IMG/VR virus record: IMGVR_UViG_3300042473_001265 | Location: 276,173-340,172 of that record | Length of the DNA: 64,000 nt | Reading direction: 5' to 3' (one strand) | In this document: in pieces, positions 36,253 through 62,618 of the stretch | How positions within the stretch are numbered: the stretch's first letter is position 1 | How the letters are laid out: each line of letters starts with the position of its first letter | Notes under the pieces: generated by a model | The model's input: only the letters and a program-made list of their open reading frames with translations | Databases searched by the model: none | What the model was told of the DNA's origin: nothing | Made by a program: the position numbers and the translations under genes

Positions 36253-37254
36253 TTATTTGATCTGTGTCCAAACTCGTTCACGAATTTGTTTAGTCAAGCT
36301 GTCGGGCAATGACACATAGTCAAGGTCAGCAGCATCCTTCTTGCCGTTGCGGAATGCCCAGTCAAAGAACTTGAGCACTTCAGCTGAAGATTTTTTATCT
36401 GCTGGATCTTTGTACATGATAATAAAGCTGGCAGTGCTTATTGGCCAGACCGCATCACCCTTTTGATCCACAATGCTCAAGCCCATGCCCGGCACACTGA
36501 ACCAATCAGCACCTGCGGCTGCGGCCGCAAATGTCACATCATCAGGGCTGACAAATTTACCGTTTTTGTTCTGTAGCTGCATAAAAGTCATGTTGTTTTT
36601 CTTTACATAAGCATACTCAACATAACCAATGCCGCCCTTGGTACGATTCACAATGGCTGCAACACCTTCGTTGCCTTTGCCACCAATACTGCTCACAGCA
36701 GGCCATTTGATTGCTGCACCACGACCCACACGCTTGGCCCACTCGGTGCTGGCCACAGTCAAGTAGTCAGTCCAGTTGAATGTTGTGCCCGACCCGTCTG
36801 CACGATGAACCACGGTGATTGGTTGATCAGGCAGCTTCTTGCCAGGGTTCAGTGCTGCCAGTCTGGCATCATTCCAACGAGTGATGTCACCCAGAAACAC
36901 TTCTGCCAACACTGTGCCAGTGATTCGCAACTCTCCAGGTTTAAACCCTTCCAAGTTCACAATAGGCACTGTGCCACCAATGATGGCGGGAAACTGTACT
37001 TGTGCTAGCTTGTCTAGCTCTGCACCTGCTACTGGAGCATCGCTGGCACCAAAGGTCACTGTTTTGTTGTTGATCTGGCGTATGCCACCTGAACTACCAA
37101 TTGACTGATAGTTGAGTCCAATGCCTGTTTCTTTCTTGTAGGCTTCTGCCCACTTGGCATAGATGGGATAGGGGAATGTTGCGCCTGCGCCAGTGATGTC
37201 TGCGTGAGCTGTGACAGTTATGGCCGCTAGCAAAATAGCTAATAGTTTGTTCAT
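36253..37254 (-). CDS. pstS: Phosphate ABC transporter substrate-binding protein PstS
   Basis: Signal peptide; GAGATFPYP, YQSIGSSGG, HRADGSGTT, GKGNEGV, WPISTASF. Confidence 0.96.
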   Translation of the reverse strand: MNKLLAILLAAITVTAHADITGAGATFPYPIYAKWAEAYKKETGIGLNYQSIGSSGGIRQINNKTVTFGASDAPVAGAELDKLAQVQFPAIIGGTVPIVNLEGFKPGELRITGTVLAEVFLGDITRWNDARLAALNPGKKLPDQPITVVHRADGSGTTFNWTDYLTVASTEWAKRVGRGAAIKWPAVSSIGGKGNEGVAAIVNRTKGGIGYVEYAYVKKNNMTFMQLQNKNGKFVSPDDVTFAAAAAGADWFSVPGMGLSIVDQKGDAVWPISTASFIIMYKDPADKKSSAEVLKFFDWAFRNGKKDAADLDYVSLPDSLTKQIRERVWTQIK

Positions 37255-38670: not shown

Positions 38671-39930
38671 ATGAAAAATATAGGCTTTATTGGCATTGGA
38701 AAATTGGGGCTGGATTGTGCCGAAGTCATGGCAGAAAAGTTCACAGTGCGGGGTTATGATATTTACCCAAGAACCAGTGACCTGATAAAAGTTTGCGGCA
38801 TTGAAGAAACTGTAAATGAAAGTGAATGGATTTTTATTGCTGTTCCTACACCGCACGAAGCTGGATACGACGGTTCGGTTCCCAGCAGTCATATGACGCC
38901 AAAAGATTTTGGACATGATGCTGTCAAAGATGCCATTGCCAAAATAAATCAATACGCCACAGAGCCTAAAAAGATTGTGTTGATCAGCACAGTGCTGCCC
39001 GGAACCACTCGCAGGCATTTTGTTAATCTACTAGACAAGCAACATCAATTTTTATACAATCCTTACTTGATTGCCATGGGTTCGGTCAAATGGGACATGG
39101 CTCATCCAGAAATGGTCATGATCGGAACCGAAGATGGCAACTGGAACGGGGTAGCATCTGAACTGGTAGACATTTACAAACAGATTATGGCCAACAATCC
39201 ACGCTACGAAATTGGCACCTGGGACGAATGCGAAGCAATAAAGATTTTTTACAACACATTCATTTCGGCCAAAGTTGGACTGGTCAACATGATACAGGAC
39301 TTTGCCATGAAGATTGGCAATATCAATGTGGATGTAGTAACTGATGCCTTGGCTCGTAGCACCATGCGTATCATGGGTCCAAAGTACATGACAGCAGGCA
39401 TGGGCGATGCCGGTGCTTGCCATCCCCGTGACAACATTGCACTGCGGTGGCTGGCCGAAGAATACGACATTGGCTACGATCTGTTTGACACTGTGATGAG
39501 TGCTAGAGAAGTGCAGGCAAAGAATCTTGCTCAGTTTTTGTTTGACACAGCCCTTCAGGACGGAAAAGCCTTTGGTCTTTTACCCATTGTGATTCACGGC
39601 AAAGCCTACAAACCCGATGTACCATACTGCATTGGCAGCTACAGCACCCTGGTTGGACACTACTTGAAAGAACTGGGAGTATTGGTCAAGTATGTTGACC
39701 CATTGGCCGACGACCTTGCTGATGTGGTGGCCACAGTTGACGGGCCCGCGGTATTTTTATGGGCTCACAATCGCAAGATCACTTACGAATACACCGGTGA
39801 TCAGCAGGACACTCAACCGTACTGTACAATTCATCCCGGCAGTGTCATTGTTGATCCGTGGCGTAAACTGTCCAAGACCATGAATGACATTACAGTAATA
39901 CACTACGGAAATACTCGTAAAACAACATGA
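38671..39930 (+). CDS. UDP-glucose/GDP-mannose dehydrogenase family protein
   Basis: GIGKLG, AVPTP, STVLPGT, KIFYNTF, GACHPRD, AYKPD. Confidence 0.92.
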   Translation: MKNIGFIGIGKLGLDCAEVMAEKFTVRGYDIYPRTSDLIKVCGIEETVNESEWIFIAVPTPHEAGYDGSVPSSHMTPKDFGHDAVKDAIAKINQYATEPKKIVLISTVLPGTTRRHFVNLLDKQHQFLYNPYLIAMGSVKWDMAHPEMVMIGTEDGNWNGVASELVDIYKQIMANNPRYEIGTWDECEAIKIFYNTFISAKVGLVNMIQDFAMKIGNINVDVVTDALARSTMRIMGPKYMTAGMGDAGACHPRDNIALRWLAEEYDIGYDLFDTVMSAREVQAKNLAQFLFDTALQDGKAFGLLPIVIHGKAYKPDVPYCIGSYSTLVGHYLKELGVLVKYVDPLADDLADVVATVDGPAVFLWAHNRKITYEYTGDQQDTQPYCTIHPGSVIVDPWRKLSKTMNDITVIHYGNTRKTT

Positions 39931-45482: not shown

Positions 45483-46036
45483 GAATCAACTGGGTTGTGG
45501 CCGACGCCACTGTGATTGCACCAGATGTGGACATTGCTGCTGTCAAAGACATTGCCAGCATTTGGGGCAGCTGGCGCACCTGGCGTGGATGCAGCACCGA
45601 CAATGTGGTGTGCAATGACGCCGGCAAAGCTCGCGAATTGTTAAAACGCAACATGCAAGAAATGTGCAACATGTATATTCCTGAGTCCATGTATGCTGAA
45701 TTGGATAGACCTCGATCGGTTCGGTTGTTTGGTGGCCAGTTTACATTTGCAGTAGACAATCAAGATGAACTGATTGCTATACAATTGGTATCTGGCCAAA
45801 GCGATATTGTGTTACTGATGGGATTTGATTGGACCGAAAAGCCCATCAGCAGTGATCGGTTAATAGCACACAGAGCAAACAACTATCGTAAATTTGTTGT
45901 GGACGCTGTACAAAACAATCCCCAAGTGCAATGGGTTTTGGTAGACCACGAAGGCGATGTCATGCCCGAATTGGCTGATTTTGATAACTTGACACAAGAT
46001 ACCCTACAAAATGTAATGGAACTACTGTCCACTTGA
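45479..46036 (+). CDS. Hypothetical protein
   Basis: Start moved to ATG 45479 (ATGA overlap). Confidence 0.65.
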   Translation: MRINWVVADATVIAPDVDIAAVKDIASIWGSWRTWRGCSTDNVVCNDAGKARELLKRNMQEMCNMYIPESMYAELDRPRSVRLFGGQFTFAVDNQDELIAIQLVSGQSDIVLLMGFDWTEKPISSDRLIAHRANNYRKFVVDAVQNNPQVQWVLVDHEGDVMPELADFDNLTQDTLQNVMELLST

Positions 46037-46061
46037 CAATGTCCAATGATCAGTGTACAAT
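46033..46061 (+). promoter_or_regulatory. Sigma70-type promoter
   Basis: TTGACA-17 nt-TACAAT. Confidence 0.8.
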
Positions 46062-46068
46062 ACTCTGT

Positions 46069-47100
46069 ATGACTACACTAAAGCGTATTGGTTTCTGTTG
46101 CAAATGGCTCAATGATCCGTCCGAATGCGGCGGCATGAAAGTCAATGCTGTGGACCGTGAACTCAACGGCCGATCAACCACCATGCGCTGGCTGCGCGAA
46201 CATCCTGCCGAAGCTGAACAGCGCCAGTGGGACATCATGAATCACAACACTGCTGCTGCTGTGCGAATGATCGAGCGTGTGGCCACACTGCCGGCCAATC
46301 GCAGAATGGTGCGGTTAGGCAGTGAAATGTTGCAAGGCTACACTGAACCCAGTTGGAAGGCCTGGTGGCAACGACCAGAGATACAAGATCATCTGGCTCG
46401 TATATTTGCACCCATTGGTGAAACTGCTCGTAGACTGGATGTTAGACTCAGCTTTCATCCCGGACAGTTTTGCGTGTTGGCAAGTGAGAATCCTGGCATT
46501 GTAGAACGCAGTATAGAAGAATTCGAATATCATGCAGACATGGTGCGTTGGATGGGCTATGGCCGAACCTTCCAGGACTTTAAGATCAATGTACACATCT
46601 CAGGCAAACGCGGACCAGCTGGTATTCGAGATGCACTCAAACGACTGTCGCCTGAAGCAAGAAGTTCAATCACAATCGAAAACGACGAAAACGCCTGGGG
46701 TGTTGACTCAAGTCTTGAACTGGCCAAAGACTGTGCTCTTGTGCTGGACATACATCATCATTGGATCCGTACTGGAGAATACATCCAGGCCACCGACGAT
46801 AGGGTCAAAGGCATAGTTGACAGCTGGCGCGGTGTTAGACCTGCACTGCATTACAGTGTGAGTCGTGAAGATGTGCTGGTGGATCATGCTGCGGATATCA
46901 TTCCGGATCATGCTGTGTTGTTAGAGGCCGGCTACAAAAAACAAAAGATGCGAGCACACAGTGATTTTTATTGGAATCAACCTGTTACTGATTGGGCTCT
47001 GACCTTTTGGGATCAGTTTGATATACAGTGCGAATCCAAAGGCAAAAACTTGTCCAGTGAACAAGTTTACCGTCGTGCTGTTGAATTGGGATTGGCATAA
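46069..47100 (+). CDS. uvsE: UV-damage endonuclease (UvsE/UVDE family)
   Basis: RLSFHPGQF, IENDE, LDIHHH, HYS, RAHSD, CESKGK; start moved to ATG 46069. Confidence 0.9.
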   Translation: MTTLKRIGFCCKWLNDPSECGGMKVNAVDRELNGRSTTMRWLREHPAEAEQRQWDIMNHNTAAAVRMIERVATLPANRRMVRLGSEMLQGYTEPSWKAWWQRPEIQDHLARIFAPIGETARRLDVRLSFHPGQFCVLASENPGIVERSIEEFEYHADMVRWMGYGRTFQDFKINVHISGKRGPAGIRDALKRLSPEARSSITIENDENAWGVDSSLELAKDCALVLDIHHHWIRTGEYIQATDDRVKGIVDSWRGVRPALHYSVSREDVLVDHAADIIPDHAVLLEAGYKKQKMRAHSDFYWNQPVTDWALTFWDQFDIQCESKGKNLSSEQVYRRAVELGLA

Positions 47101-51483: not shown

Positions 51484-52059
51484 ATGGCAAACCAAACAGA
51501 TACAGAATTCAACAAAGACCACACACAGGCCTTGGCCGACATAGGCATGTATGTGCTGATGGGAGAAATCAATGCTGAAACAGTCAAACCGGTGATTGAA
51601 TGGATTTTACACGAAAACTTTGTGTCCAAGAAAAAACGCAAAGAACTCTTGTTGATGATCTGTAGTGAGGGCGGCGATGTACAAGATGCATTTGCCTTGA
51701 TTGATGTGATGCGCAGCAGTCTTATTCCTGTAAAGACAGTGGGCTTGGGAATGATTGCCAGTTCGGGACTGTTGATTTTTCTTGCTGGCAGTGCTGGACG
51801 CCGTGTGTTGACTCCAAACACTTCGATACTGAGTCATCAATTCTCTTGGTACAACGAAGGCAAGGTTCATGAGTTATTTGCCACTATGAAAGAGTTTGAA
51901 CTGACTCAACACCGTATGGTCAAGCACTATCAAGAATGCACTGGGCTTGATGAAGAAAACATTCGTAAAAATTTACTACCACCACATGATGTATGGCTCA
52001 CTGCCGAAGATGCATTAAGACTCCGCATCTGCGATAGCATTTCAATACTTCAGCGCTGA
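51484..52059 (+). CDS. clpP: Divergent ClpP-like protease
   Basis: ICSEGGDV, IASSG (Ser), SHQF (His), DVWLTAEDAL. Confidence 0.85.
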   Translation: MANQTDTEFNKDHTQALADIGMYVLMGEINAETVKPVIEWILHENFVSKKKRKELLLMICSEGGDVQDAFALIDVMRSSLIPVKTVGLGMIASSGLLIFLAGSAGRRVLTPNTSILSHQFSWYNEGKVHELFATMKEFELTQHRMVKHYQECTGLDEENIRKNLLPPHDVWLTAEDALRLRICDSISILQR

Positions 52060-53700: not shown

Positions 53701-54291
53701 ATGCCCCATCTAGTCCCAATGGTAATCGAGCAAACCTCCAAAGGCGAGCGCAGTTACGACATCTACAGCCGTCTGCTCAAAGATCGTATTGTGATGTTGG
53801 ATACCGAAGTCAGTGATCACAGTGCCAGCTTGATCGTTGCACAAATGTTATTTTTGGAGAGTGAAAATCCCGACGCAGATATCCTGTTTTACATCAACAG
53901 CCCAGGCGGTGTTATTACCGCAGGTATGAGCATTTATGACACAATGAACTTTATCAAATGCGATGTCAGCACCATTGTGATGGGACAAGCCTGCTCAATG
54001 GGGTCATTTTTGGCACAGGCTGGCACAGCGGGCAAACGACTGATGCTGCCACATGCACGACACATGATACACCAACCGTCGGGTGGTGCCCGTGGCATGG
54101 CCAGTGACATTGAAATCAGCTACAAAGAAATCATGCATATGAAAAAGATGCTGACCGATCTGTATGTCAAGCACAACAGCCGTGGCAAAACCTATGAGGA
54201 ATTTGAGCGCGACATGGACCGAGACACCTTTATGAGTGCAGCGGAAGCGCTGGATTATGGGTTGATTGATAAAATTGTGGAAAAGCGCTGA
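53701..54291 (+). CDS. clpP: ATP-dependent Clp protease proteolytic subunit
   Basis: [38 protein letters not shown]. Confidence 0.96.
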
Positions 54292-54299
54292 AATAACAG

Positions 54300-54328
54300 T
54301 TGACCAATAAATCCATTTGTCGTATAAT
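54300..54328 (+). promoter_or_regulatory. Sigma70-type early promoter
   Basis: TTGACC-17 nt-TATAAT. Confidence 0.88.
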
Positions 54329-54352
54329 TAACACTTAGCAACAAGGAGTCGT

Positions 54353-54526
54353 ATGGCAGGCAAAGCAAAATCATGTTATCTTTCGGTAACTCAAATTGAC
54401 ACCAGGAAAACTGTGTTGAACCGAATGTTTTTTAAAATGGCCGACCTTAATGATTTTGTGAAAACTGATGAATTCAAAGCAAAATATCCTCCCGAACAGT
54501 ATCAAGTAACCAAAGAAATCTATTAA
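54353..54526 (+). CDS. Small hypothetical protein (57 aa)
   Basis: SD AAGGAG after promoter; not in ORF track. Confidence 0.7.
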   Translation: MAGKAKSCYLSVTQIDTRKTVLNRMFFKMADLNDFVKTDEFKAKYPPEQYQVTKEIY

Positions 54527-54697
54527 ATGATTTTCAATCCCATTATTAATCCTAGAAAGAAAACCATGACTGTTCCTACCACAATCCGCACTGCCACTGG
54601 CGGCACAATTACCTATACCAAAACAGGGCTGATTCATCGCTCCAATGGCGCATATTCTGGAAAAATTGCTGCACTGGAAAAACCACCAAAAAAGTAA
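54527..54697 (+). CDS. Small hypothetical protein
   Basis: Abuts previous stop; followed by a terminator. Confidence 0.5.
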   Translation: MIFNPIINPRKKTMTVPTTIRTATGGTITYTKTGLIHRSNGAYSGKIAALEKPPKK

Positions 54698-54713
54698 TAC
54701 TTTTTACTACTAA

Positions 54714-54738
54714 AAAACCCGTCTGATTGGCGGGTTTT
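54714..54738 (+). terminator. Intrinsic terminator
   Basis: AAAACCCGTC/GGCGGGTTTT stem. Confidence 0.8.
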
Positions 54739-54744
54739 GTTTTG

Positions 54745-54773
54745 GTTGACTCAAAATGCTCTTTTTGCTATAA
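54745..54773 (+). promoter_or_regulatory. Sigma70-type early promoter
   Basis: TTGACT-17 nt-TATAAT. Confidence 0.9.
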
Positions 54774-54804
54774 TAGTGGTATAGTAAGTAAAAAGGAGCG
54801 TGAA

Positions 54805-54993
54805 ATGGACTACACCAAACACCTGGAACTTGTCACCAATTGGGGCATGTACCACAACATCCAGGGCGGCATGCTGGAAACTTTACAGGCCATGCAGGCA
54901 TGTGGGTCAGACGAACTGCACCGCGACGAGCGCCTGGCCGTGCGTGAATTGATGGCAGGCTTTGGCCAATTGCTGGCGCCAGTTGACCAATAA
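54805..54993 (+). CDS. Hypothetical protein
   Basis: Start moved to ATG 54805; ends VDQ* across the next -35. Confidence 0.7.
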   Translation: MDYTKHLELVTNWGMYHNIQGGMLETLQAMQACGSDELHRDERLAVRELMAGFGQLLAPVDQ

Positions 54994-55011
54994 TTCCCAA
55001 AGTGCTATAAT
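54983..55011 (+). promoter_or_regulatory. Sigma70-type early promoter
   Basis: TTGACC-17 nt-TATAAT. Confidence 0.9.
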
Positions 55012-55041
55012 AGTGGCATAGTAAGTAAAAAGGATGTCAAT

Positions 55042-55371
55042 ATGAACGCAACTGAACTGGACTCTAAAGCCGCACCGTTTGCATGGCTCGCCGCCAGAGA
55101 TGCAGCAATAAAAAGTTATGCTGCCAGCACATTGTACACTGAAGCTCAAAAAATTCGTGCAGAGCGCATGAAGTTGGGACTGGAGATGGTGTACTCCGTT
55201 AAGAGTGCTTTCCTCACTTATCGCAAGAAGTTTGTGACTATTAAATTGGATCAAGCTCAAGTGCGCGACCGTAAGACACTGGCTTTGCTGGAACAAGATT
55301 ATACTGCACAAGGCAACATTAGCAAAGTAATTACCGCACAAGGCATCACTTATCGTATTGCCCGCAGTTGA
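55042..55371 (+). CDS. Hypothetical protein
   Basis: Own promoter and SD; stop TGA lies in the next -35. Confidence 0.75.
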   Translation: MNATELDSKAAPFAWLAARDAAIKSYAASTLYTEAQKIRAERMKLGLEMVYSVKSAFLTYRKKFVTIKLDQAQVRDRKTLALLEQDYTAQGNISKVITAQGITYRIARS

Positions 55372-55396
55372 CTAATAATTCCCAATCGGTTATAAT
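55368..55396 (+). promoter_or_regulatory. Sigma70-type early promoter
   Basis: TTGACT-17 nt-TATAAT. Confidence 0.9.
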
Positions 55397-55426
55397 AGTG
55401 GCATAGTAAGTAAACAGGAGCAGACA

Positions 55427-55681
55427 ATGATTGTTAAAACAGGTGATGTGATTCGCAGTTACGATTTCAAACCCATGCTGGGTCGTGAAGATTGCTTTGT
55501 GGAAGGTATGGTAATCGAAGCCACTGCCGAGCAAGGTTACGATGCTTATAAAATCCGTGTGACTCGGGACTCCTGGTCAGATGCTGAAGACAAAGGTCGT
55601 TTTGGCAAAGTCATCTTTGTGCCTGTGGCAGTGGCCTACAACGACTTTCCGGGTCGTGTGATGAATCTGAGCCGTGTCTAA
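55427..55681 (+). CDS. Hypothetical protein
   Basis: SD CAGGAG. Confidence 0.75.
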   Translation: MIVKTGDVIRSYDFKPMLGREDCFVEGMVIEATAEQGYDAYKIRVTRDSWSDAEDKGRFGKVIFVPVAVAYNDFPGRVMNLSRV

Positions 55682-55686
55682 AACGG

Positions 55687-55715
55687 TTGACTAATATTCA
55701 CCAAAGTGCTATAAT
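55687..55715 (+). promoter_or_regulatory. Sigma70-type early promoter driving the paralogue array
   Basis: TTGACT-17 nt-TATAAT. Confidence 0.9.
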
Positions 55716-55745
55716 TAACACTTGAACAGCAACAAGGAATCGACT

Positions 55746-55946
55746 ATGACACGATATGTTCACATTGTTTATGTCCACCCCGTAGAACTTGGTCTGCCCA
55801 ACCTGTCGAAGGTCAAGTCGGAACAAGAATTTGACACTTGGAAACAGGCAATGGGGTATGTTGAACACTTCAATGCTCACGCAAAAGACGGTGTTGAGGC
55901 CGTGTACTACGGCAGGGTCAATGATGCCACAGGAGAATTAGAATGA
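55746..55946 (+). CDS. Hypothetical protein
   Basis: Start moved to ATG 55746 after AAGGA. Confidence 0.7.
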   Translation: MTRYVHIVYVHPVELGLPNLSKVKSEQEFDTWKQAMGYVEHFNAHAKDGVEAVYYGRVNDATGELE

Positions 55947-56155
55947 ACATGAGCTATTGTATGTTTCAAAATACCGCAACTGATCTGCGGCACTGTCTTG
56001 AGAGCATGGATGCAGCCGAGACCCTGGCTGAACTGGAACTGAGCCGCGACGAAAAACGCAGCTACGATCTCATGCGAGAATACTGCGAAAACTTCCTGAA
56101 CATTGCTGAACGACTGGATGATGCTGACGCTGACGCTGTTGGAGTTGCGAAATGA
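55943..56155 (+). CDS. Hypothetical protein (MSYCMFQNT motif)
   Basis: ATGA-coupled. Confidence 0.7.
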   Translation: MNMSYCMFQNTATDLRHCLESMDAAETLAELELSRDEKRSYDLMREYCENFLNIAERLDDADADAVGVAK

Positions 56156-56397
56156 ACGAACGAATTCTAGAACTGTTGAAACAGGCATCTAAACTTGCCA
56201 ACACCGATGACAACAAAGATATTGACCGCAATTTTGATATGATTGTGGCAGAAAAGTTCGCCGAACTGATTGTGAAAGAATGTTTGAATATTGTTATGCT
56301 TACACACAACGAAGGCAATGCAGATAATTTTTCATACGACGATGCACTTGATCATGTGTTTAGTAACATGAAAGAACATTTCGGAGTTGAATCGTGA
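56152..56397 (+). CDS. MNERI/KFAELIV/HFGVE family paralogue 1
   Basis: All three conserved blocks present. Confidence 0.85.
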   Translation: MNERILELLKQASKLANTDDNKDIDRNFDMIVAEKFAELIVKECLNIVMLTHNEGNADNFSYDDALDHVFSNMKEHFGVES

Positions 56398-56597
56398 AAG
56401 TGACCCATCCCTACACCTTGATAAAGCGGCGTATTGATGTTGTGGCCCGAGTGCCAGCCTGGGCGGTTGGAGAGATAAACAAAGGCGATCTGGTCATACG
56501 TCTGGATGCTCAAACTGTTTTTTTGCGAGATAAAGGCAGATACAAGGTGGGCGAATCCTACACCGAGTTCTGGGGCTACACAGGAGAAAATGCATGA
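56394..56597 (+). CDS. Hypothetical protein
   Basis: GTGA/ATGA-coupled; not a family member. Confidence 0.65.
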   Translation: MKVTHPYTLIKRRIDVVARVPAWAVGEINKGDLVIRLDAQTVFLRDKGRYKVGESYTEFWGYTGENA

Positions 56598-56923
56598 ACA
56601 AACGAATTCAACAACTTGCCGAACAGGCTACATCTTACAATAACAGTGATGGTTGGCTTTTTGATAAAGAAAAGTTCGCTGAACTGATTGTGGCTGAATG
56701 TTTGGCACAGGTTGCCCGGGTGGATGACATGTTGGAAGATGAGCCTGCACAACATGCGGCAGTGGCCTGGGTGGCCCGGTCGATTGCCGACCATTTTGGA
56801 GTTGCGAAACCCCAGTCAGACTGGGATCAAGAAGCAGCTGAATTTATTGCCGCAGAGGATAAAAAGGTTGCCAGCAGATACGGATATGTCCCAAAACTTC
56901 ATCCATCAGAATGGAAAGACTAA
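56594..56923 (+). CDS. Family paralogue 2, with C-terminal extension
   Basis: MNKRIQQLAEQA, EKFAELIVAEC, DHFGVAK. Confidence 0.85.
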   Translation: MNKRIQQLAEQATSYNNSDGWLFDKEKFAELIVAECLAQVARVDDMLEDEPAQHAAVAWVARSIADHFGVAKPQSDWDQEAAEFIAAEDKKVASRYGYVPKLHPSEWKD

Positions 56924-57138
56924 TGAACGAACGAATTAAAGAACTTTATACACAAGTCTGTATGGAACAGAATCTTCCGTTCACACTTGAACATAACAGT
57001 GCGTATATGTTAGATGCATTTGCAGACAAGTTCGCCGAGTTGATTGTGCGGGAATACTCTTACGATGTGATGAATTTACACGGGGCGAGTCCAGAGCGAG
57101 TAGCGATGGCTGCTAAACATTGGGAAGTTGAACTATGA
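56923..57138 (+). CDS. Family paralogue 3
   Basis: MNERIKEL, DKFAELIVREY, KHWEVEL; start moved to 56923. Confidence 0.8.
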   Translation: MNERIKELYTQVCMEQNLPFTLEHNSAYMLDAFADKFAELIVREYSYDVMNLHGASPERVAMAAKHWEVEL

Positions 57139-57365
57139 ACCTACGAATTAAACAACTGGCTGAACAATGCTGGGACAAGCGTCCAGAAGGCCAATTACAT
57201 TTTGACAACGAAAAATTCGCCGAATTGATTGTTCAGGAATGTATATCAGTTATTAATACTAAGGCTACCGAAGTTCCTGTTGAAGATGAATATGAAAGAA
57301 TGTGGAAGATGGGAACGGAATTTGCTGTATATCAGATTGATAAACATTTTGGAGTTGAAGAATGA
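57135..57365 (+). CDS. Family paralogue 4
   Basis: MNLRIKQLAEQC, EKFAELIVQEC, KHFGVEE. Confidence 0.85.
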   Translation: MNLRIKQLAEQCWDKRPEGQLHFDNEKFAELIVQECISVINTKATEVPVEDEYERMWKMGTEFAVYQIDKHFGVEE

Positions 57366-57622
57366 ATCAACGAATTCGAGCTCTTGCTGAAAAAGCAAAC
57401 ATTGAGTTTACCTATGACCCAACAGAGACACCTGTCAGAGCATTTGTCGAGTGTTGGGAAGATGATCTTGAAAAGTTCGTTGACATGATTGTGAAGGAAT
57501 GTATCGCTCAATGTGAAAGCCAGAACACAGTCATTACCACAGATATAGGCACAGAAGCGTGGGGAGAAATTTCTGATGCGGTAGAGCAGATTAAACGACA
57601 TTTTTACGGAGTTGAAGAATGA
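57362..57622 (+). CDS. Family paralogue 5
   Basis: MNQRIRALAEKA, EKFVDMIVKEC, HFYGVEE. Confidence 0.85.
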   Translation: MNQRIRALAEKANIEFTYDPTETPVRAFVECWEDDLEKFVDMIVKECIAQCESQNTVITTDIGTEAWGEISDAVEQIKRHFYGVEE

Positions 57623-57855
57623 ACTTACGAATTCAACAACTTGCCGAACAGGCTAGGCAATATGCTGAATCCAAAATGCATCTAACCGGATGGAACTATA
57701 TTGCCGAGTATAACGAAAAGTTCGCCCAGTTGATTGTGCGGGAATGTATGGATGCAGTGGGTGATGGACCAATGCAAAGACCAGAAATTCAAAGGATCAA
57801 AGCCAAGTTTGGGGTTGAGTATTACAAGCCAATTGAAAAAGCATTTGGGAGTTGA
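57619..57855 (+). CDS. Family paralogue 6
   Basis: MNLRIQQLAEQA, EKFAQLIVREC, KFGVE. Confidence 0.85.
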   Translation: MNLRIQQLAEQARQYAESKMHLTGWNYIAEYNEKFAQLIVRECMDAVGDGPMQRPEIQRIKAKFGVEYYKPIEKAFGS

Positions 57856-57858
57856 ATC

Positions 57859-58254
57859 GTGAACATAACTGTATACAGCTGGAATCTACTAAAAGAATCC
57901 TGTGAGCGTTGGTCGGTGCCCAGAGACTTTGCCGACCCCATGCTGAACTATCTGGTGTATGGTTATGCGCCAGGTAGTTGTTTCTCTGCGGTGTTGGCCA
58001 ATGACTTTTTTAGAGCAATTGGATCCAGCCATCCCAGTAACACTGTGGAAGCATTCAAGGCCTTGTCTGGTTGGATCCAAGATACTATGCCTCGTGAAGC
58101 ATTCGGCAGCTACGAAACTGTTCGACAGTGGTGTCAGCTTGATGCTGGGACTCGCCGAGCGATCCTTGAACGTCAGGGGCTGATCTATACCCAGCATGAA
58201 GAAGTGTTCAAGATTCTACGGAATGAGCATGCTGTGGAACCTGTATTATACTAA
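57859..58254 (+). CDS. Hypothetical protein
   Basis: GTG start after GGAG; PGSCFSAVLANDF. Confidence 0.7.
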   Translation: MNITVYSWNLLKESCERWSVPRDFADPMLNYLVYGYAPGSCFSAVLANDFFRAIGSSHPSNTVEAFKALSGWIQDTMPREAFGSYETVRQWCQLDAGTRRAILERQGLIYTQHEEVFKILRNEHAVEPVLY

Positions 58255-58268
58255 CACGGAGTTGAACC

Positions 58269-58568
58269 ATGATGCAAGATTTCATGTATGAGCAAACTCG
58301 AGTCACTGTGACCGACACATGGGATGACGAGATATCACAGTCTGTGATTGCAGCCGCAGTCAATGCGCCTCGAGTCAGCTACAGGATTTATTATTCCCAG
58401 GACAACCTGACCCGTAGGATTTTTGTTCATCGCGGCTGGCCCAACTGCACACCCGCAGAGATTGACGCATTGTTGGGCTTGGGATTTGTATTTGCACAAC
58501 CCGGTGATGCAGACAACATTCCCAACCAAGCCGTAGAGGAACATGAAATTGAAGGAATCGAACCATGA
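58269..58568 (+). CDS. Hypothetical protein
   Basis: SD GGAG; 99 aa. Confidence 0.65.
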   Translation: MMQDFMYEQTRVTVTDTWDDEISQSVIAAAVNAPRVSYRIYYSQDNLTRRIFVHRGWPNCTPAEIDALLGLGFVFAQPGDADNIPNQAVEEHEIEGIEP

Positions 58569-58687
58569 AAGTCTACAAGCACAGCAACGGTAAAACAAGT
58601 CTATTTCCTGAACACATTCCCCAGGGTTGGGTAGTTTTTCTAAATCCCAACACATTTGACATTGTATGGCGTAGGAGTGGATCATGA
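58565..58687 (+). CDS. Small hypothetical protein (40 aa, MKVYKHSNG...)
   Basis: ATGA-coupled at both ends. Confidence 0.6.
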   Translation: MKVYKHSNGKTSLFPEHIPQGWVVFLNPNTFDIVWRRSGS

Positions 58688-58926
58688 CAATTGAACAAGA
58701 ATATCTAGAAAAATACATAAATCCTCGGATTAAAAAATTGTTTGAACAGGCCAATGGACAATTTTACATTTCTCCTGGCAACCAAACTCCGCGATTCGTG
58801 TTTGAACACAACAACATGCTTGATTTTATTGACTTGATTGTGCAGGAATGTGCCCGGATTGCTGACACAGCAGAGCCCTATCAAACCAGCGATTTGATTT
58901 TGAAACACTTTGGAGTTGAATCATGA
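58684..58926 (+). CDS. Family paralogue 7, with N-terminal extension
   Basis: INPRIKKLFEQA, DLIVQEC, KHFGVES. Confidence 0.8.
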   Translation: MTIEQEYLEKYINPRIKKLFEQANGQFYISPGNQTPRFVFEHNNMLDFIDLIVQECARIADTAEPYQTSDLILKHFGVES

Positions 58927-59042
58927 CCGAAGGAGAACGAGCAGGACGCTGGGCTATGATATATCTCTATACGGCGTTGTTTGCTTTATGGTTTAATATT
59001 GTTGCCATTGCGGTTTGGCACATCCGGGAGTGGTTTTTATGA
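58923..59042 (+). CDS. Small membrane peptide (39 aa)
   Basis: ATGA-coupled at both ends; one TM. Confidence 0.55.
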   Translation: MTEGERAGRWAMIYLYTALFALWFNIVAIAVWHIREWFL

Positions 59043-59269
59043 ACGAACGAATTCGAGAACTTGCCGAACAGGCTGGAATTGAATTTACCTATGACCCAAC
59101 TGAGACTCCTATGCGAGCTTTTGTGGAATGTTGGGAAGATGAGATGGCAAAGTTCGCCCAGTTGATTGTGCAGGAATGTGGTCGAGCATTGAATCCCATG
59201 TTGCGTGACATGATCAGTCGCGGCCAGGCCGTAGACATGATTAAACAACATTTCGGAGTTGAAGAATGA
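59039..59269 (+). CDS. Family paralogue 8
   Basis: MNERIRELAEQA, AKFAQLIVQEC, QHFGVEE; start moved to 59039. Confidence 0.85.
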   Translation: MNERIRELAEQAGIEFTYDPTETPMRAFVECWEDEMAKFAQLIVQECGRALNPMLRDMISRGQAVDMIKQHFGVEE

Positions 59270-59778
59270 AATCACATTATACCTGCGGAAAATGTAACCT
59301 GTTGTTAGAAGCAGGTGACAAACATTTTTTTACTCACAGTCTTAAAAAAGTATCTAATAATAGTAATTTAACAGTTATTGGACAATGTAAAGCCTGCGCC
59401 AAACAATATGCTACAAAATGGCGTAGTGACATTAAGGCCAAAGGATTAGTTCGTAGTCAAAAGACAACAATAGCATTAGCAGGTGCAGTTACAGGAACCG
59501 TGTATGTTATCGGTACTGATAGTCCCGGAGCTCCTTATAAAATTGGAATAACTTCGGGATCAGATACTCGAAAAAGAAAAGCAGCATTACAAACAGCACA
59601 CTGGATGGATCTTAAAGAAGTTTGGAAATCAGACTTGTTGTACCGAGCAGATATTATTGAAAAAAAATTACACAAACATTTTGAAAAGAAATGGGTGAGG
59701 GGAGAATGGTTCAATATCACAAAAGACGATATTACCAATATTCCAAACTTAATAGAACATTTTGGTGTGGAAGAATGA
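59266..59778 (+). CDS. Zn-finger plus GIY-YIG (T5orf172-like) nuclease
   Basis: CGKC...CKAC; VYVIG...YKIGIT...KRKAALQT...EKKLH...RGEWF; ends EHFGVEE. Confidence 0.82.
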   Translation: MKSHYTCGKCNLLLEAGDKHFFTHSLKKVSNNSNLTVIGQCKACAKQYATKWRSDIKAKGLVRSQKTTIALAGAVTGTVYVIGTDSPGAPYKIGITSGSDTRKRKAALQTAHWMDLKEVWKSDLLYRADIIEKKLHKHFEKKWVRGEWFNITKDDITNIPNLIEHFGVEE

Positions 59779-60005
59779 GTGACTCCATCATACCCGTAAC
59801 TCAGTTTGCTACCAGCTTCACTGGCGTGCTGCCCATTGCCACTGTGGGCAAAGGTGTTGTCAAACAGGAAAGTTGGCAACAGACCACTTATCCCAATGGT
59901 GCCACGGTCACCAGGATTTATCACAACAGCATTGAAGTGTATGATAACCGTGCAGTTGTGACCCGGCACAATGAACCAAACATCATTGACATATTGATCA
60001 AGTAA
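59775..60005 (+). CDS. Hypothetical protein
   Basis: Start moved to ATG 59775 (ATGA overlap). Confidence 0.6.
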   Translation: MSDSIIPVTQFATSFTGVLPIATVGKGVVKQESWQQTTYPNGATVTRIYHNSIEVYDNRAVVTRHNEPNIIDILIK

Positions 60006-60047
60006 TATTAAAATAACACACCAGGAGAAAAGACGATTTTGCTCTGG

Positions 60048-60076
60048 TTGACCATTAATTCCCGTTCTGCTATAAT
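60048..60076 (+). promoter_or_regulatory. Sigma70-type early promoter
   Basis: TTGACC-17 nt-TATAAT. Confidence 0.9.
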
Positions 60077-60104
60077 ATACACATAAACAGCAAACGGAGC
60101 AGAC

Positions 60105-60263
60105 ATGCAGATGACACCGGAACAGAAGGCAGTAGAGATTGAGCGTTTGACAGCTGAATACGAGTGGCTGACTCTCATCAGCTGTAACGGTCGTTACGGT
60201 GGCAACATTTTTATCAAGCAGGCTGCTATTTCTGAAAAATTGCGTGAGTTAGCCAACGATTGA
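60105..60263 (+). CDS. Small hypothetical protein (52 aa)
   Basis: SD GGAG; stop TGA lies in the next -35. Confidence 0.65.
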   Translation: MQMTPEQKAVEIERLTAEYEWLTLISCNGRYGGNIFIKQAAISEKLRELAND

Positions 60264-60288
60264 CCATTAATTCCCATTCTGCTATAAT
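60260..60288 (+). promoter_or_regulatory. Sigma70-type early promoter
   Basis: TTGACC-17 nt-TATAAT; nearly identical to 60048, including the leader. Confidence 0.9.
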
Positions 60289-60318
60289 ATACACATAAAC
60301 AGCAAACAGGAGAGCCAA

Positions 60319-60534
60319 ATGAGCAAGTTTGAAGTTCGTTTTTTTCGTAGTGAAGATGCAGCATCTTCCAGCTGGCTGGTGACTGAAGTGCTGGCGGACG
60401 ACGGCGAAGGCAATCGCACCAGCGATATCCGTGCTGAATTTGACCCCACCCCTGCGGGGCAGGAACAGGCCCGCGACCTGGCTCATGCGCTGAACCGCGA
60501 AATTGAACAAGAAATCTACGCAGAATTTGGTTGA
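60319..60534 (+). CDS. Acidic hypothetical protein
   Basis: SD CAGGAG. Confidence 0.7.
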   Translation: MSKFEVRFFRSEDAASSSWLVTEVLADDGEGNRTSDIRAEFDPTPAGQEQARDLAHALNREIEQEIYAEFG

Positions 60535-60541
60535 GGCAATT

Positions 60542-60694
60542 ATGAAACCCGTGTCTTTTGTTATACAACTACCGCGTCAGCGTCGCCGAGCTGTGGAACT
60601 GTACAGCCGCGACACGCCGTTCAAATCCCGTGTTGAGCAGTCACGAACAGTGTACACTCGTCGGGTCAAACATGCCAAACAATTACAAGAGTAA
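60542..60694 (+). CDS. Small basic protein, weak ArfA-like pattern
   Basis: TPFKSRVEQSRTVYTRRVKH; start moved to 60542. Confidence 0.55.
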   Translation: MKPVSFVIQLPRQRRRAVELYSRDTPFKSRVEQSRTVYTRRVKHAKQLQE

Positions 60695-60699
60695 ACCGT

Positions 60700-60855
60700 A
60701 TGACTATTCAACATTGGGATTATTTAAAAACTGCAATGGAAGTGCTGGAGTCTGGCCAAGCCAGTGACGCCAACACCATCAAAATACTCAAGATCATGAG
60801 CGAAATCTGTGCAATGAACGCACAAAAGATGACACAGCTTCTGGTTGACCAATAA
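60700..60855 (+). CDS. Small hypothetical protein (51 aa)
   Basis: Ends VDQ* across the next -35. Confidence 0.55.
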   Translation: MTIQHWDYLKTAMEVLESGQASDANTIKILKIMSEICAMNAQKMTQLLVDQ

Positions 60856-60873
60856 TTGCCATTCTGCTATAAT
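60845..60873 (+). promoter_or_regulatory. Sigma70-type early promoter
   Basis: TTGACC-17 nt-TATAAT. Confidence 0.9.
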
Positions 60874-60903
60874 TAATACTTAAACAGCAACAAGGAGTCG
60901 AAA

Positions 60904-62564: not shown

Positions 62565-62587
62565 TAGACTAGCAGTCTATAGAATAG

Positions 62588-62609
62588 AAAACCCGCCTAG
62601 GCGGGTTTT
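62588..62609. terminator. Bidirectional terminator between convergent genes
   Basis: Perfect palindrome AAAACCCGCCTAGGCGGGTTTT. Confidence 0.88.
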
Positions 62610-62618
62610 TCTTTGTTT

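Follow-up and report, generated by a model that had tools for sequence, protein, structure and literature searches.

A phage array of small proteins in which two swappable variable cassettes are held in a constant frame

In T4-type phages, the hyperplastic regions are rearranged by PeSLs, which are intergenic promoter-plus-terminator units repeated among small, mostly unknown early genes, and which serve as points of exchange between otherwise unrelated sequence, creating insertions, deletions and replacements between close relatives (Arbiol et al. 2010, PMC2839356; Comeau et al. 2014, PMC4122927). In pilin antigenic variation of Neisseria, variable minicassettes are flanked by short conserved coding segments that guide the exchange of variable parts within a constant protein frame, with one expressed gene (pilE) and silent, promoterless partial donors (pilS). 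In the orphan toxin/immunity cassettes of CDI and Rhs polymorphic toxin loci, arrays of variable modules are each joined to a constant part at a conserved peptide-coding motif that doubles as the recombination site. Host-takeover and early small-gene modules, such as Bacillus phage SPO1 gp37-60 and the early ORFs of T4 hyperplastic regions, place many small genes behind host-type early promoters; these genes are mostly of unknown function and dispensable in the laboratory, several bind host machinery, and they are collections of unrelated genes. In diversity-generating retroelements, a constant scaffold displays variable residues produced by adenine-directed mutagenesis, giving a repertoire of binders. 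Here we examine an array of small phage genes that resembles each of these systems in part.

The DNA analysed (the window) is a stretch of 64,000 nucleotides at the end of a ~340-kb uncultured lake-phage contig (IMG/VR record IMGVR_UViG_3300042473_001265, positions 276,173 to 340,172). A preliminary description, made from the sequence alone, had claimed eight small paralogues with a constant scaffold of three blocks and two hypervariable loops, translationally coupled behind one early promoter and interleaved with unrelated small genes. This observation is confirmed. All eight ORFs are present and align with blocks MNxRIxxLAEQA / EKFAELIVxEC / xHFGVE(E/S), although two starts needed correction: member 3 most likely starts at its ATG (TAATG overlap with member 2) and not at 56911, and member 8 most likely starts at its ATG (ATGA overlap) and not at TTG 59015. 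An HMM of the eight, run against the six-frame translation of the whole window, found exactly these eight (E 4.6e-30 to 1.3e-25), and the next hit had E 0.12, so the match is far beyond chance. The two segments between the blocks, which we call V1 and V2, differ in length and cannot be aligned, with the exception of V1 of members 5 and 8, which is shared (141 nt, 79% identical). The stop/start overlaps (ATGA, GTGA, TAATG) are real. A near-consensus sigma-70-type promoter (11 of 12 matches, with an extended -10) lies upstream, and no equally good one follows before 59986; that the genes are early is inferred from the promoter type and was not shown. The interleaved genes are unrelated to the family. 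The features are listed in the table, in which L085 is a syntenic relative that carries the same promoter and flanking genes at 83-95% identity.

Table. Features of the array and of its surroundings, in window positions.
Position	Strand	Feature	Remarks
28044-29252		ClpX	
51484-52059		ClpP paralogue	
53701-54291		Second ClpP paralogue	Just upstream of the early small-gene region
54714-54738		Strong hairpin (z -3.85)	In front of the promoter copy at 54746
55687-55715	+	Sigma-70-type promoter that heads the operon	TTGACT, 17 nt, TATAAT, with TG; one copy of a ~48-nt promoter cassette repeated eight times between 54300 and 60892
55746-56155	+	Two leading non-family small genes (55746-55946 and 55943-56155)	The second ends in a degenerate copy of the junction cassette (GGAGTTGCGAAATGA); its orthologue in L085 ends in FGVEE
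56152-56397	+	Family member 1 (81 aa)	
56394-56597	+	Interleaved unrelated gene (67 aa)	GTG start overlapping the stop of member 1
56594-56923	+	Family member 2 (109 aa)	38-residue extension after HFGVA of block 3; in L085 the same tail sits on a different body
56923-57138	+	Family member 3 (71 aa from ATG 56923)	Block 3 is degenerate (KHWEVEL)
57135-57365	+	Family member 4 (76 aa)	Modelled with AlphaFold
57362-57622	+	Family member 5 (86 aa)	Shares its V1 cassette with member 8
57619-57855	+	Family member 6 (78 aa)	In-frame block 3 (AKFGVEY), followed by a second block-3 copy that is out of frame for member 6 but still supplies GGAG 7 nt before the GTG of the next gene
57859-58687	+	Three interleaved non-family genes (57859-58254, 58269-58568, 58565-58687)	A non-coding copy of the junction cassette at 58256-58272 serves the second gene
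58684-58926	+	Family member 7 (80 aa)	11-residue N-terminal extension; block 1 begins INPRI
58923-59042	+	Interleaved hydrophobic gene (39 aa)	
59039-59269	+	Family member 8 (76 aa from ATG 59039)	
59266-59778	+	T5orf172/MUG113 (GIY-YIG-like) gene	Last residues are family block 3 (EHFGVEE); absent from L085 and from the other loci, so probably a mobile insertion that took over the end of a family gene
59775-60005	+	Last gene of the operon (76 aa)	Its orthologue in L085 follows directly after a family member
57210-57240	+	Example of central block 2 at the DNA level	Eight copies, at 56251, 56669, 57025, 57210, 57470, 57715, 58819 and 59147, each 31 nt; where V1 and V2 are re-paired
57336-57367	+	Example of the 3' junction cassette CATTTYGGAGTTGAAnnATGA	Block 3, a Shine-Dalgarno sequence and a stop/start overlap; other copies at 56368, 57833, 58897, 59240 and 59749

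We next asked how widely the family occurs, a census across phages having been proposed beforehand. The family is very large, with at least 7,996 hits at the 90% clustering level and 6,825 representatives at the 50% level, and it was found only in viral or lake-metagenome sequence. Arrays are the rule: in 84 loci that were retrieved there are 309 copies, 1-13 per locus and always on one strand. No known family was matched. The best Pfam E-value for the eight window members is 0.025, below every cut-off, and across 138 aligned members the best is 0.0019, in scattered families each hit by at most 3 members. PHROGs gave only three stray hits at E above 0.003, NCBIfam gave none, and a profile search of the PDB gave E 0.067 at best. 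The preliminary statement that no function is assigned is therefore supported. By contrast, the gene that follows member 8 exceeds the Pfam gathering scores of PF13455 (41.2 bits, cut-off 22.3) and PF10544 (34.0 bits, cut-off 20).

A structure prediction of each member had also been suggested in advance, to look for a common fold with exposed loops. AlphaFold gave a confident model of member 4, the only member modelled (pLDDT 92.6, pTM 0.73), consisting of a helix, a beta-hairpin and a long helical hairpin, with lower confidence in the last residues. In this model the three blocks form one packed base, V1 is the beta-hairpin and linker, and V2 is the distal half of the helical hairpin, so the variable parts are not just loops. 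Foldseek gave E of at least 0.46 against the PDB and at least 0.095 against AFDB clusters, and the only structural neighbours were family members (TM 0.69-0.94).

We then asked how the variable parts vary. Among 485 non-redundant proteins, 4,443 pairs share V1 but not V2, 364 share V2 but not V1, and only 203 share both; there are 270 V1 clusters and 299 V2 clusters in 429 combinations. At the nucleotide level, 195 gene pairs share only V1, 127 share only V2 and 14 share both. The cassettes differ in length (V1 8-49 residues, V2 11-59 residues) and fall into discrete types. A comparison of selection on the parts of the protein had been named as a test, and within a cassette type pN/pS was 0.165 for V1 and 0.209 for V2, indicating purifying selection. 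These data show that V1 and V2 are not hypervariable in the mutational sense, but are discrete, conserved cassettes that assort independently.

Direct cases of re-pairing were seen in related phages. The family genes of L085 include one made of member-1 V1, member-4 V2 and the member-2 tail, and another made of a new V1 and member-5 V2. In L088, another of the compared loci, member-3 V1 (99% identical) is joined to a member-8-type V2. In both comparisons every homology tract ends in a block, at block 2 or at the block 3/block 1 junction. It had been stated in advance that a lack of variation between strains would count against the system, and the nearest strain (99.4% identical) has no difference in the array, so recent change within a strain lineage was not seen, whereas L085 and L088 do differ from the window as described. 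Cassettes are almost never repeated within an array (1 V1 pair and 2 V2 pairs of 422), and block identity is the same within a locus as between loci (0.743 against 0.741 for block 2).

The blocks are also conserved at synonymous sites, with one preferred codon at most positions. The share of the preferred codon in the block against the background is 84% against 17% for CGA, 81% against 20% for GCC, 83% against 23% for GAG, 81% against 25% for TTG and 94% against 25% for GGA. The preference in block 1 could come from selection on translation initiation and that in block 3 from the ribosome-binding site, and only block 2 lacks such an alternative. The GGA codon is that of the Gly in the terminal GVEE of block 3, and these last four residues are mainly the ribosome-binding site of the next gene, together with an ATGA overlap. 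A 4-nt stop/start overlap was found in 194 of 234 copies (83%). GGAG is present in 144 of 190 copies whose downstream gene is not a family member, whereas only 8 of 188 family genes with a non-family upstream gene have the cassette upstream. In the window the cassette is kept out of frame in member 6 and in non-coding DNA.

Absence of expression had been named beforehand as an outcome that would refute the idea of an active system. Short contigs identical or nearly identical to member 5 and to the region labelled g39/V1 occur in two lake or freshwater metatranscriptome libraries. This evidence for transcription is weak, since it rests on a few short contigs in RNA libraries in which DNA carry-over is not excluded, and timing was not measured. 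The proteins are acidic, with a median pI of 4.8.

Comparison with the described systems gave the following results. As with PeSLs, recombination between repeated copies explains the indels and replacements between close relatives, but through a different kind of repeat: the family blocks are coding sequence and not promoters, and they lie in frame, so that exchange makes hybrid proteins as well as new gene orders. The window does have a separate sigma-70 promoter repeat (eight copies, 11 of 12 consensus matches), but only the copy at 54746 has a strong hairpin in front and the other seven do not (z -1.1 to +0.9), and no T4 core genes were identified in the window. As in pilE/pilS, variable minicassettes are flanked by conserved coding segments; however, all eight copies are complete ORFs with a start codon and an upstream GGAG or stop/start coupling, and exchange appears to occur between genomes as much as within one. 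As for CDI and Rhs loci, no large ORF lies in or near the array, there is no large delivery protein and no VENN or PxxxxDPxGL motif, and the interleaved genes are irregular and match no family, without regular toxin/immunity pairing; the products are stand-alone 75-residue cytoplasmic-type proteins. Unlike the SPO1 and T4 early modules, the array is one scaffold family with swappable cassettes. As for diversity-generating retroelements, the only long internal repeat (V1 of members 5 and 8) differs by 30 substitutions of all types, 17 of them at third codon positions, so there is no template/variable repeat pair. No reverse transcriptase was found among about 40 window ORFs scanned against Pfam, but as not every ORF was scanned this leaves its presence undecided.

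Taken together, the analysis itself establishes that the region is a 17-gene, translationally coupled operon behind a sigma-70-type promoter, carrying eight members of a very large unannotated family of acidic proteins of about 75 residues; that each gene is built as block 1, V1, block 2, V2, block 3, the blocks making the base of a small fold in the one confident model; that the cassettes are conserved, assort independently and occur in other pairings in related phages; that the blocks keep preferred codons; and that the 3' end of the family genes, to the extent counted above, carries a ribosome-binding site and an overlap, so that whatever gene follows is translated. The rest of our explanation goes beyond these results and is inferred. 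In this view, the blocks act as in-frame homology anchors, so that phage or host recombination between co-infecting genomes exchanges half-genes and whole genes; copies in one array are drawn from a community-wide pool rather than made by local duplication; the built-in ribosome-binding site makes each gene a non-polar plug-in; and the proteins are made early and act as small two-surface binders of host or defence components, the array being a non-redundant repertoire. We consider this explanation somewhat more likely than not. Mean block-2 identity between copies is only 74% over 33 nt, which is short for efficient homologous recombination, and breakpoints at blocks could partly reflect selection for hybrids that still fold rather than homology-guided exchange. 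In addition, all data come from metagenome assemblies and no host is known. The preliminary interpretation is partly supported: the paralogue array, the constant scaffold, the two variable segments, the translational coupling and the single sigma-70-like promoter are all real. Its functional reading, a diversified binder repertoire such as anti-defence or host-takeover proteins, is plausible and compatible with the non-redundant arrays, the acidity and the promoter of early type, but no result here bears on what the proteins bind, and it remains an inference from architecture and context alone. Curated models of anti-defence proteins (Acr, Ocr/ArdA-type DNA mimics and others) were not compared, and acidity is a weak resemblance only. 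A further reading, which is possible but unlikely on present evidence, is that the family is a natural combinatorial library, in which a roughly 45-residue constant frame presents two independently exchangeable recognition cassettes and the blocks serve at once as protein core, in-frame recombination anchors and, at the 3' end, the ribosome-binding site of the next gene. Lake phages would then draw on a shared community pool of hundreds of V1 and V2 types to assemble non-redundant early repertoires of two-site binders or adaptors against host proteins or defence systems, and these might bridge targets to phage machinery such as the phage-encoded ClpXP.

Among the alternatives, the one that survives best, although we regard it as unlikely, is that the genes are selfish or near-neutral plug-in cassettes, which persist because their conserved ends let them recombine into any operon without polar effects while the proteins do little for the phage. 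The ribosome-binding site carried for the next gene, the lack of greater similarity among copies within a genome, the spread of the family over very different phage contigs of 30-345 kb, and the presence of a mobile T5orf172 gene and small GIY-YIG-like ORFs in or near the arrays are all in its favor. However, purifying selection acts on each cassette type, arrays almost never repeat a cassette, the fold is predicted with high confidence and the core residues are kept. Moreover, the phage keeps an identical array in two independent assemblies, and most of its 31-mers recur in 24 lake-water runs dated 2020-2025.

It is less likely that the blocks are RNA or DNA signals, such as regulatory structures or protein-binding sites, and that the ORFs are secondary. 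Synonymous sites are conserved in all three blocks and block 3 clearly works at the nucleotide level, but amino-acid conservation exceeds codon conservation (for example F 97%, as TTC or TTT), the one candidate pairing between block 1 and block 2 shows no covariation (Fisher p 0.22), and the confident protein model places the blocks in one packed base.

We also wondered whether the mosaics could be assembly chimeras, in which short-read assemblers join different family genes at the shared blocks. All sequences are metagenomic, exact matches of 31 nt between blocks of different paralogues exist, and in lake DNA runs depth spikes at the blocks and many short contigs join blocks of different paralogues. 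Nonetheless, the same hybrid genes, in the same gene order, were assembled independently from different samples and differ by SNPs (locus L085 against L087 at 98.4%, L088 against L089 at 99.7%, L001 against L003 at 96.9%). The halves of hybrids are 80-95% identical to their counterparts, not 100%, so the exchanges predate much divergence; the ORFs stay intact, and one mosaic protein occurs on 45 contigs. We therefore consider this very unlikely.

Equally doubtful is the idea that the proteins are adaptors or substrates for the phage's own ClpXP, with the constant base or the free C-terminal tail docking on phage ClpX and the cassettes picking host proteins for degradation. The window encodes ClpX and two ClpP paralogues, and the last residues of the model have lower confidence. 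However, ClpP lies within 8 kb of the arrays in only 4 of about 79 lineages, and the tail, which has no resemblance to known ClpX tags or adaptors (a comparison that was not tested), is explained by the ribosome-binding site. Finally, targeted hypermutation by a diversity-generating retroelement or similar, suggested by the constant frame with variable segments and by the lack of annotation in much of the window, is the least likely, given the missing repeat pair and the discrete conserved types of different lengths.

Modular shuffling guided by recombination at short repeats is already described in phages, and the family extends the idea from intergenic regulatory cassettes to in-frame positions inside genes. 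The array also gives a clear example of a coding motif (GVEE) that is conserved chiefly because it is the ribosome-binding site of the next gene, which motif-based annotation should take into account. The family is one of the larger protein families without any annotation that were found only in viral or lake-metagenome sequence, and 16 kb of phage DNA can hold up to 13 copies. It shows an unusual and clean evolutionary design, in which variation comes from re-pairing two conserved cassette sets within a tiny fixed frame and not from point mutation. If the cassettes are binding surfaces, the family is a ready-made catalogue of small binders aimed at freshwater bacteria, and a compact scaffold for engineering.

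We first asked whether eight small related genes are indeed present in the window, as a preliminary description made from the sequence alone had claimed. Eight ORFs lie on the + strand and align with three shared blocks, MNxRIxxLAEQA, EKFAELIVxEC and xHFGVE(E/S). A profile HMM built from them and run against the six-frame translation of the 64-kb window found exactly these eight, with E-values of 4.6e-30 to 1.3e-25, whereas the next hit had an E-value of 0.12. The observation is therefore real, although two of the start codons should be moved, because stop/start overlaps and comparison with relatives show that member 3 most likely starts at 56923 and member 8 at 59039. The two segments between the blocks (V1 and V2) differ in length and cannot be aligned, except that members 5 and 8 share V1 (141 nt, 79% identical). 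The array lies within a run of 17 genes that are joined by ATGA, GTGA or TAATG overlaps or by gaps of 3 and 14 nt, and that follow a near-consensus sigma-70 promoter. No promoter of equal quality occurs before 59986 and no convincing terminator lies in between. The term 'early', which the preliminary description had applied to this promoter, is inferred from the promoter type only. The coordinates of these and other features are collected in the table below.

Positions of the features discussed in the text (window coordinates unless another sequence is named)
Feature	Position	Strand	Remarks
Array of eight family genes	56152-59269	+	
Run of 17 coupled genes	55746-60005		
Near-consensus sigma-70 promoter	55687-55715		
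Region of the repeated promoter cassette	54300-60892		Cassette of ~48 nt (TTGACy, 17 nt, TATAAT, plus a shared leader up to the ribosome-binding site) occurring eight times, each in front of one or a few small genes; copies at 60048 and 60260 are 98% identical
Strong terminator hairpin	54714-54738		Precedes the promoter copy at 54746, the only copy so preceded
C-terminal extension of member 2	56810-56923; L085 2785-2897		38 residues after HFGVA
Two block 3 copies of member 6	57800-57862		Second copy out of frame for member 6, with GGAG 7 nt before the GTG of the next gene
Alternative-frame ORF at member 6	57734-57862		Ends in HLGVES
Non-coding copy of the block 3 element	58256-58272		
T5orf172/MUG113 gene	59266-59778		Ends with family block 3 (EHFGVEE, with partly different codons)
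Antisense ORFs opposite the array (examples)	56576-56794, 57332-57601, 58967-59275	-	Contain FHNQ..ELF
Contig from a metatranscriptome library	57467-57617		151 nt, identical
Contig from an RNA library	58903-59045 joined to 57369-57446		39-aa gene followed by a V1 identical to that of member 5 instead of member 8
ClpX	28044-29252		Zinc finger plus AAA domain
First ClpP	51484-52059		
Second ClpP	53701-54291		Just upstream of the early small-gene region
B12-binding radical-SAM enzyme, PstS-like phosphate-binding protein, UV endonuclease UvdE, UDP-glucose dehydrogenase-like protein	7914-9542, 36253-37254, 46033-47100, 38671-39930		
Perfect bidirectional terminator hairpin	62587-62610		Between convergent gene blocks
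Small GIY-YIG-like ORF (example)	L084 7197-7556		~110 aa, near an array in one of the related loci
Two adjacent genes of Synechococcus phage S-SRM01	MW015081.1 58323-58758		71-75 aa; MT.EQIL.LA..., then.FA..I

The window is the last 64 kb of the IMG/VR contig UViG_3300042473_001265 (340,172 bp), which comes from an uncultured phage, and most of the 31-mers of the array (69-99%) were found in each of 24 lake-water metagenome runs dated 2020 to 2025. The window encodes ribonucleotide reductase, a DNA ligase and several auxiliary genes, as well as ClpX and two ClpP paralogues, which together form a complete ClpXP protease. The phage has no close relative among 50,697 phage records, and its reductase is at best 60% identical to that of a Xanthomonas phage. 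DNA and protein searches of the same records found nothing significant for the array, the only hits having E-values of about 1. The best leads were a Manatee Spring virus and Synechococcus phage S-SRM01, a cultured freshwater cyanophage. These are possible distant relatives that share only the N-terminal half of the pattern and not the C-terminal half.

A census of the family, which the preliminary description had proposed as a check, showed that it is very large. A profile search of clusters at 90% identity gave at least 7,996 hits at E <= 0.01, and an exhaustive search of the representatives at 50% identity gave 6,825 proteins at E <= 0.001 and 739 at E <= 1e-10, nearly all of them 65-120 residues long. 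The three blocks are strikingly constant across these proteins, the nearly invariant residues being M1, N2, R4, I5, L8, Q11, A12, K27, F28, A29, L31, I32, V33, E35, C36, H71, F72, G73 and V74 of member 4. Some relatives (proteins P0022, P0075, P0132, P0141, P0162 and P0178) are fused tandems with two family units in one ORF, presumably because the stop between neighbours was lost. Searches of Pfam, PHROGs, NCBIfam and PDB sequences gave no significant match, and in a feature search of the ESM Atlas all 100 nearest clusters were unnamed and viral. Weak resemblances to XkdN-type tail chaperones, the SGTA dimerisation domain and Get1 had TM below 0.6 or E above 0.02, and were judged to be partial helical matches. 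In 185,579 bacterial and archaeal species genomes we found only 17 hits, all on contigs of freshwater MAGs from many unrelated phyla. These are probably mis-binned phage DNA, so they give no clue to the host. In 84 loci fetched around relatives the HMM found 309 copies, 1 to 13 per locus of at most 16 kb, all on the strand of the seed copy, indicating that arrays are the rule. The reverse complement of block 2 gives recurrent antisense ORFs in the window and in 21 other loci, and these cluster as a false 'family' that could mislead gene callers.

We next examined the fold; the absence of a shared fold had been named in advance as a result that would count against the preliminary description. 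AlphaFold2 was run on member 4 alone with a 138-sequence alignment, and gave a pLDDT of 92.6 and a pTM of 0.73, with a helix at residues 3-10, strands at 13-15 and 21-23, helices at 25-46 and 52-72, and a less confident tail (mean pLDDT 76 for residues 71-76). In this model block 1 is the first helix, block 2 is the first half of the second helix, and block 3 is the end of the third helix plus the tail, so that the three blocks lie together at one end of the molecule, whereas V1 is the beta-hairpin and V2 is the far half of the helical hairpin. This placement follows from the secondary-structure map and the antiparallel hairpin, and was not checked against coordinates. Foldseek found no solved fold or AFDB fold that matched. 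The only good matches were family members in BFVD (TM 0.69-0.83) and three unnamed viral ESM Atlas clusters (TM 0.83-0.94), which supports a common fold for members with other cassettes.

We then asked whether the variable segments are hypervariable loops, as had been suggested. The first hits of the family search already looked like mosaics of the window members. When 485 non-redundant proteins were compared pair by pair, 203 pairs shared both V1 and V2 (at least 70% identity), 4,443 pairs shared V1 only and 364 pairs shared V2 only. Clustering gave 270 V1 types and 299 V2 types in 429 combinations; 54 V1 types have two or more V2 partners, and 74 V2 types have two or more V1 partners. One V1 type is over-represented because the search shares words with the query. 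At the nucleotide level, gene pairs from different loci shared only V1 in 195 cases, only V2 in 127 and both in 14. The ratio of non-synonymous to synonymous change, a measure that had been put forward beforehand for a comparison of the scaffold with the loops, was determined within cassette types. The pN/pS was 0.165 for V1 and 0.209 for V2, which indicates purifying and not diversifying selection. The second IMG/VR contig, which is 99.4% identical, has no difference in the array. The V1 shared by members 5 and 8 differs by 30 substitutions of all types, mostly at third codon positions, and this rules out adenine-directed mutagenesis. Taken together, these data show that the variable parts are shuffled cassettes rather than hypervariable loops.

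A direct case of re-pairing was found in contig L085, a syntenic relative that has the same promoter cassette and orthologues of the two leading genes, of the 99-aa gene, of the last gene and of the next operon, all 83-95% identical at the nucleotide level. One of its family genes is block 1 and V1 of member 1, followed by block 2, V2 and block 3 of member 4 (92.9% identical) and then by the tail of member 2 (88.9%). A second gene has member-4 V1 with a new V2, a third has a member-5/8-type V1 with a member-7-type V2, and a fourth has a new V1 with member-5 V2 (94.9%). Every homology tract starts or ends in block 2 or at the block 3/block 1 junction. The tail of member 2 behaves as a third exchangeable module; in L085 it follows a different V2. 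In L088, another related contig, member-3 V1 (99.3%) is joined to a member-8-type V2 (86%). These mosaics were assembled independently from different samples and differ by SNPs (98.4%, 99.7% and 96.9% identity), and their halves are diverged from the copies in the window, so that assembly chimeras are unlikely, though not excluded. The T5orf172/MUG113 gene is missing from L085, where a family gene sits in its place, and it looks like a mobile nuclease gene that replaced the body of a family member. A homing endonuclease as the general driver of the exchange was nevertheless rejected, because this gene is unique to this phage among the loci, and a small ORF that we read by eye as GIY-YIG-like, without scanning it against any family library, recurs near the arrays on the same strand in only 16 of 78 loci.

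The blocks are also conserved as nucleotides. In 274 non-identical copies, most block codons are dominated by one synonym that is far from the background of the same genes. In block 1 the preferred codons are AAC (81% in the block against 34% in the background), CGA (84% against 17%) and CTT (63% against 20%). In block 2 they are AAG (87% against 35%), TTC (72% against 21%), GCC (81% against 20%), GAG (83% against 23%), TTG (81% against 25%) and CGG (57% against 9%), and in block 3 they are GGA (94% against 25%) and GTT (89% against 39%). A codon calibration within one V1 type had only three DNA copies to draw on and was uninformative. We considered RNA pairing between block 1 (GAACTT) and block 2 (AAGTTC), but found no covariation (p 0.22). 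Concerted evolution within a genome was rejected as well, because block identity is the same within and between loci (0.674/0.680, 0.743/0.741 and 0.813/0.812, the second pair being that of block 2), so there is no homogenisation inside a genome. Copies in one array look like draws from a common pool. Whereas the re-pairing of cassettes and the codon preference are shown by the data, it is our reading that the blocks are in-frame homology anchors for exchange between genomes. This reading has caveats: the homology is short and averages 74% identity, selection for hybrids that still fold would also place surviving breakpoints in the blocks, and block 1 may in addition be shaped by translation initiation.

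Block 3 is largely a ribosome-binding site. Of 234 copies, 173 end exactly three residues after the Gly of FG, and the stop overlaps the next start by 4 nt in 194 and by 1 nt in 22 more. The DNA reads GGAGTTGAAnnATGA, that is GGAG, 7 nt, then ATG. The element belongs to the 3' end of family genes. GGAG is present in 144 of 190 copies that are followed by a non-family gene, whereas only 8 of 188 family genes preceded by a non-family gene have the cassette upstream. In the window the element is kept where it is not translated as GVEE, once out of frame at the end of member 6 and once in non-coding DNA. The HF part varies at synonymous sites (TTC 58%, TTT 42%) and ends the last helix, so it is a protein feature. 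Each family gene thus brings the translation signal for whatever follows, which would make its insertion non-polar.

Silence of the genes had likewise been named as an outcome that would refute the preliminary description. We also looked for the array in RNA data. Two lake or freshwater metatranscriptome libraries contain short contigs from the array. This evidence is weak, since DNA carry-over is not excluded and no silent control region was examined. One of these contigs, in which the 39-aa gene is followed by the V1 of member 5, may be a natural variant or a conversion of member 8.

The closest known mechanism is PeSL-mediated modular shuffling in T4-type phages (PMC2839356, PMC4122927). 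It differs from the present case in that the anchors here are coding and in frame, and in that the promoter repeats of the window lack the PeSL terminator in seven of eight copies. Pilin minicassettes and the orphan cassettes of polymorphic toxins are analogous in logic, but their defining features were not found here.

Taken together, the array is real and the family appears undescribed. The interpretation in the preliminary description was supported only in part, because the mechanism that it proposed has to be corrected from hypervariable loops to shuffled cassettes. The proteins are acidic (median pI 4.8, median charge -6), lie behind a host-type promoter and occur as non-redundant sets, in which only 1 V1 pair and 2 V2 pairs of 422 within-locus pairs share a cassette. 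No conserved partner gene accompanies the arrays, and ClpP lies nearby in only four lineages, so that a linkage to ClpP was rejected. Function was not tested by any of these analyses, and what follows is inferred. Our best guess, which we hold only tentatively, is that the arrays are an early repertoire of small two-surface binders of host or defence proteins.
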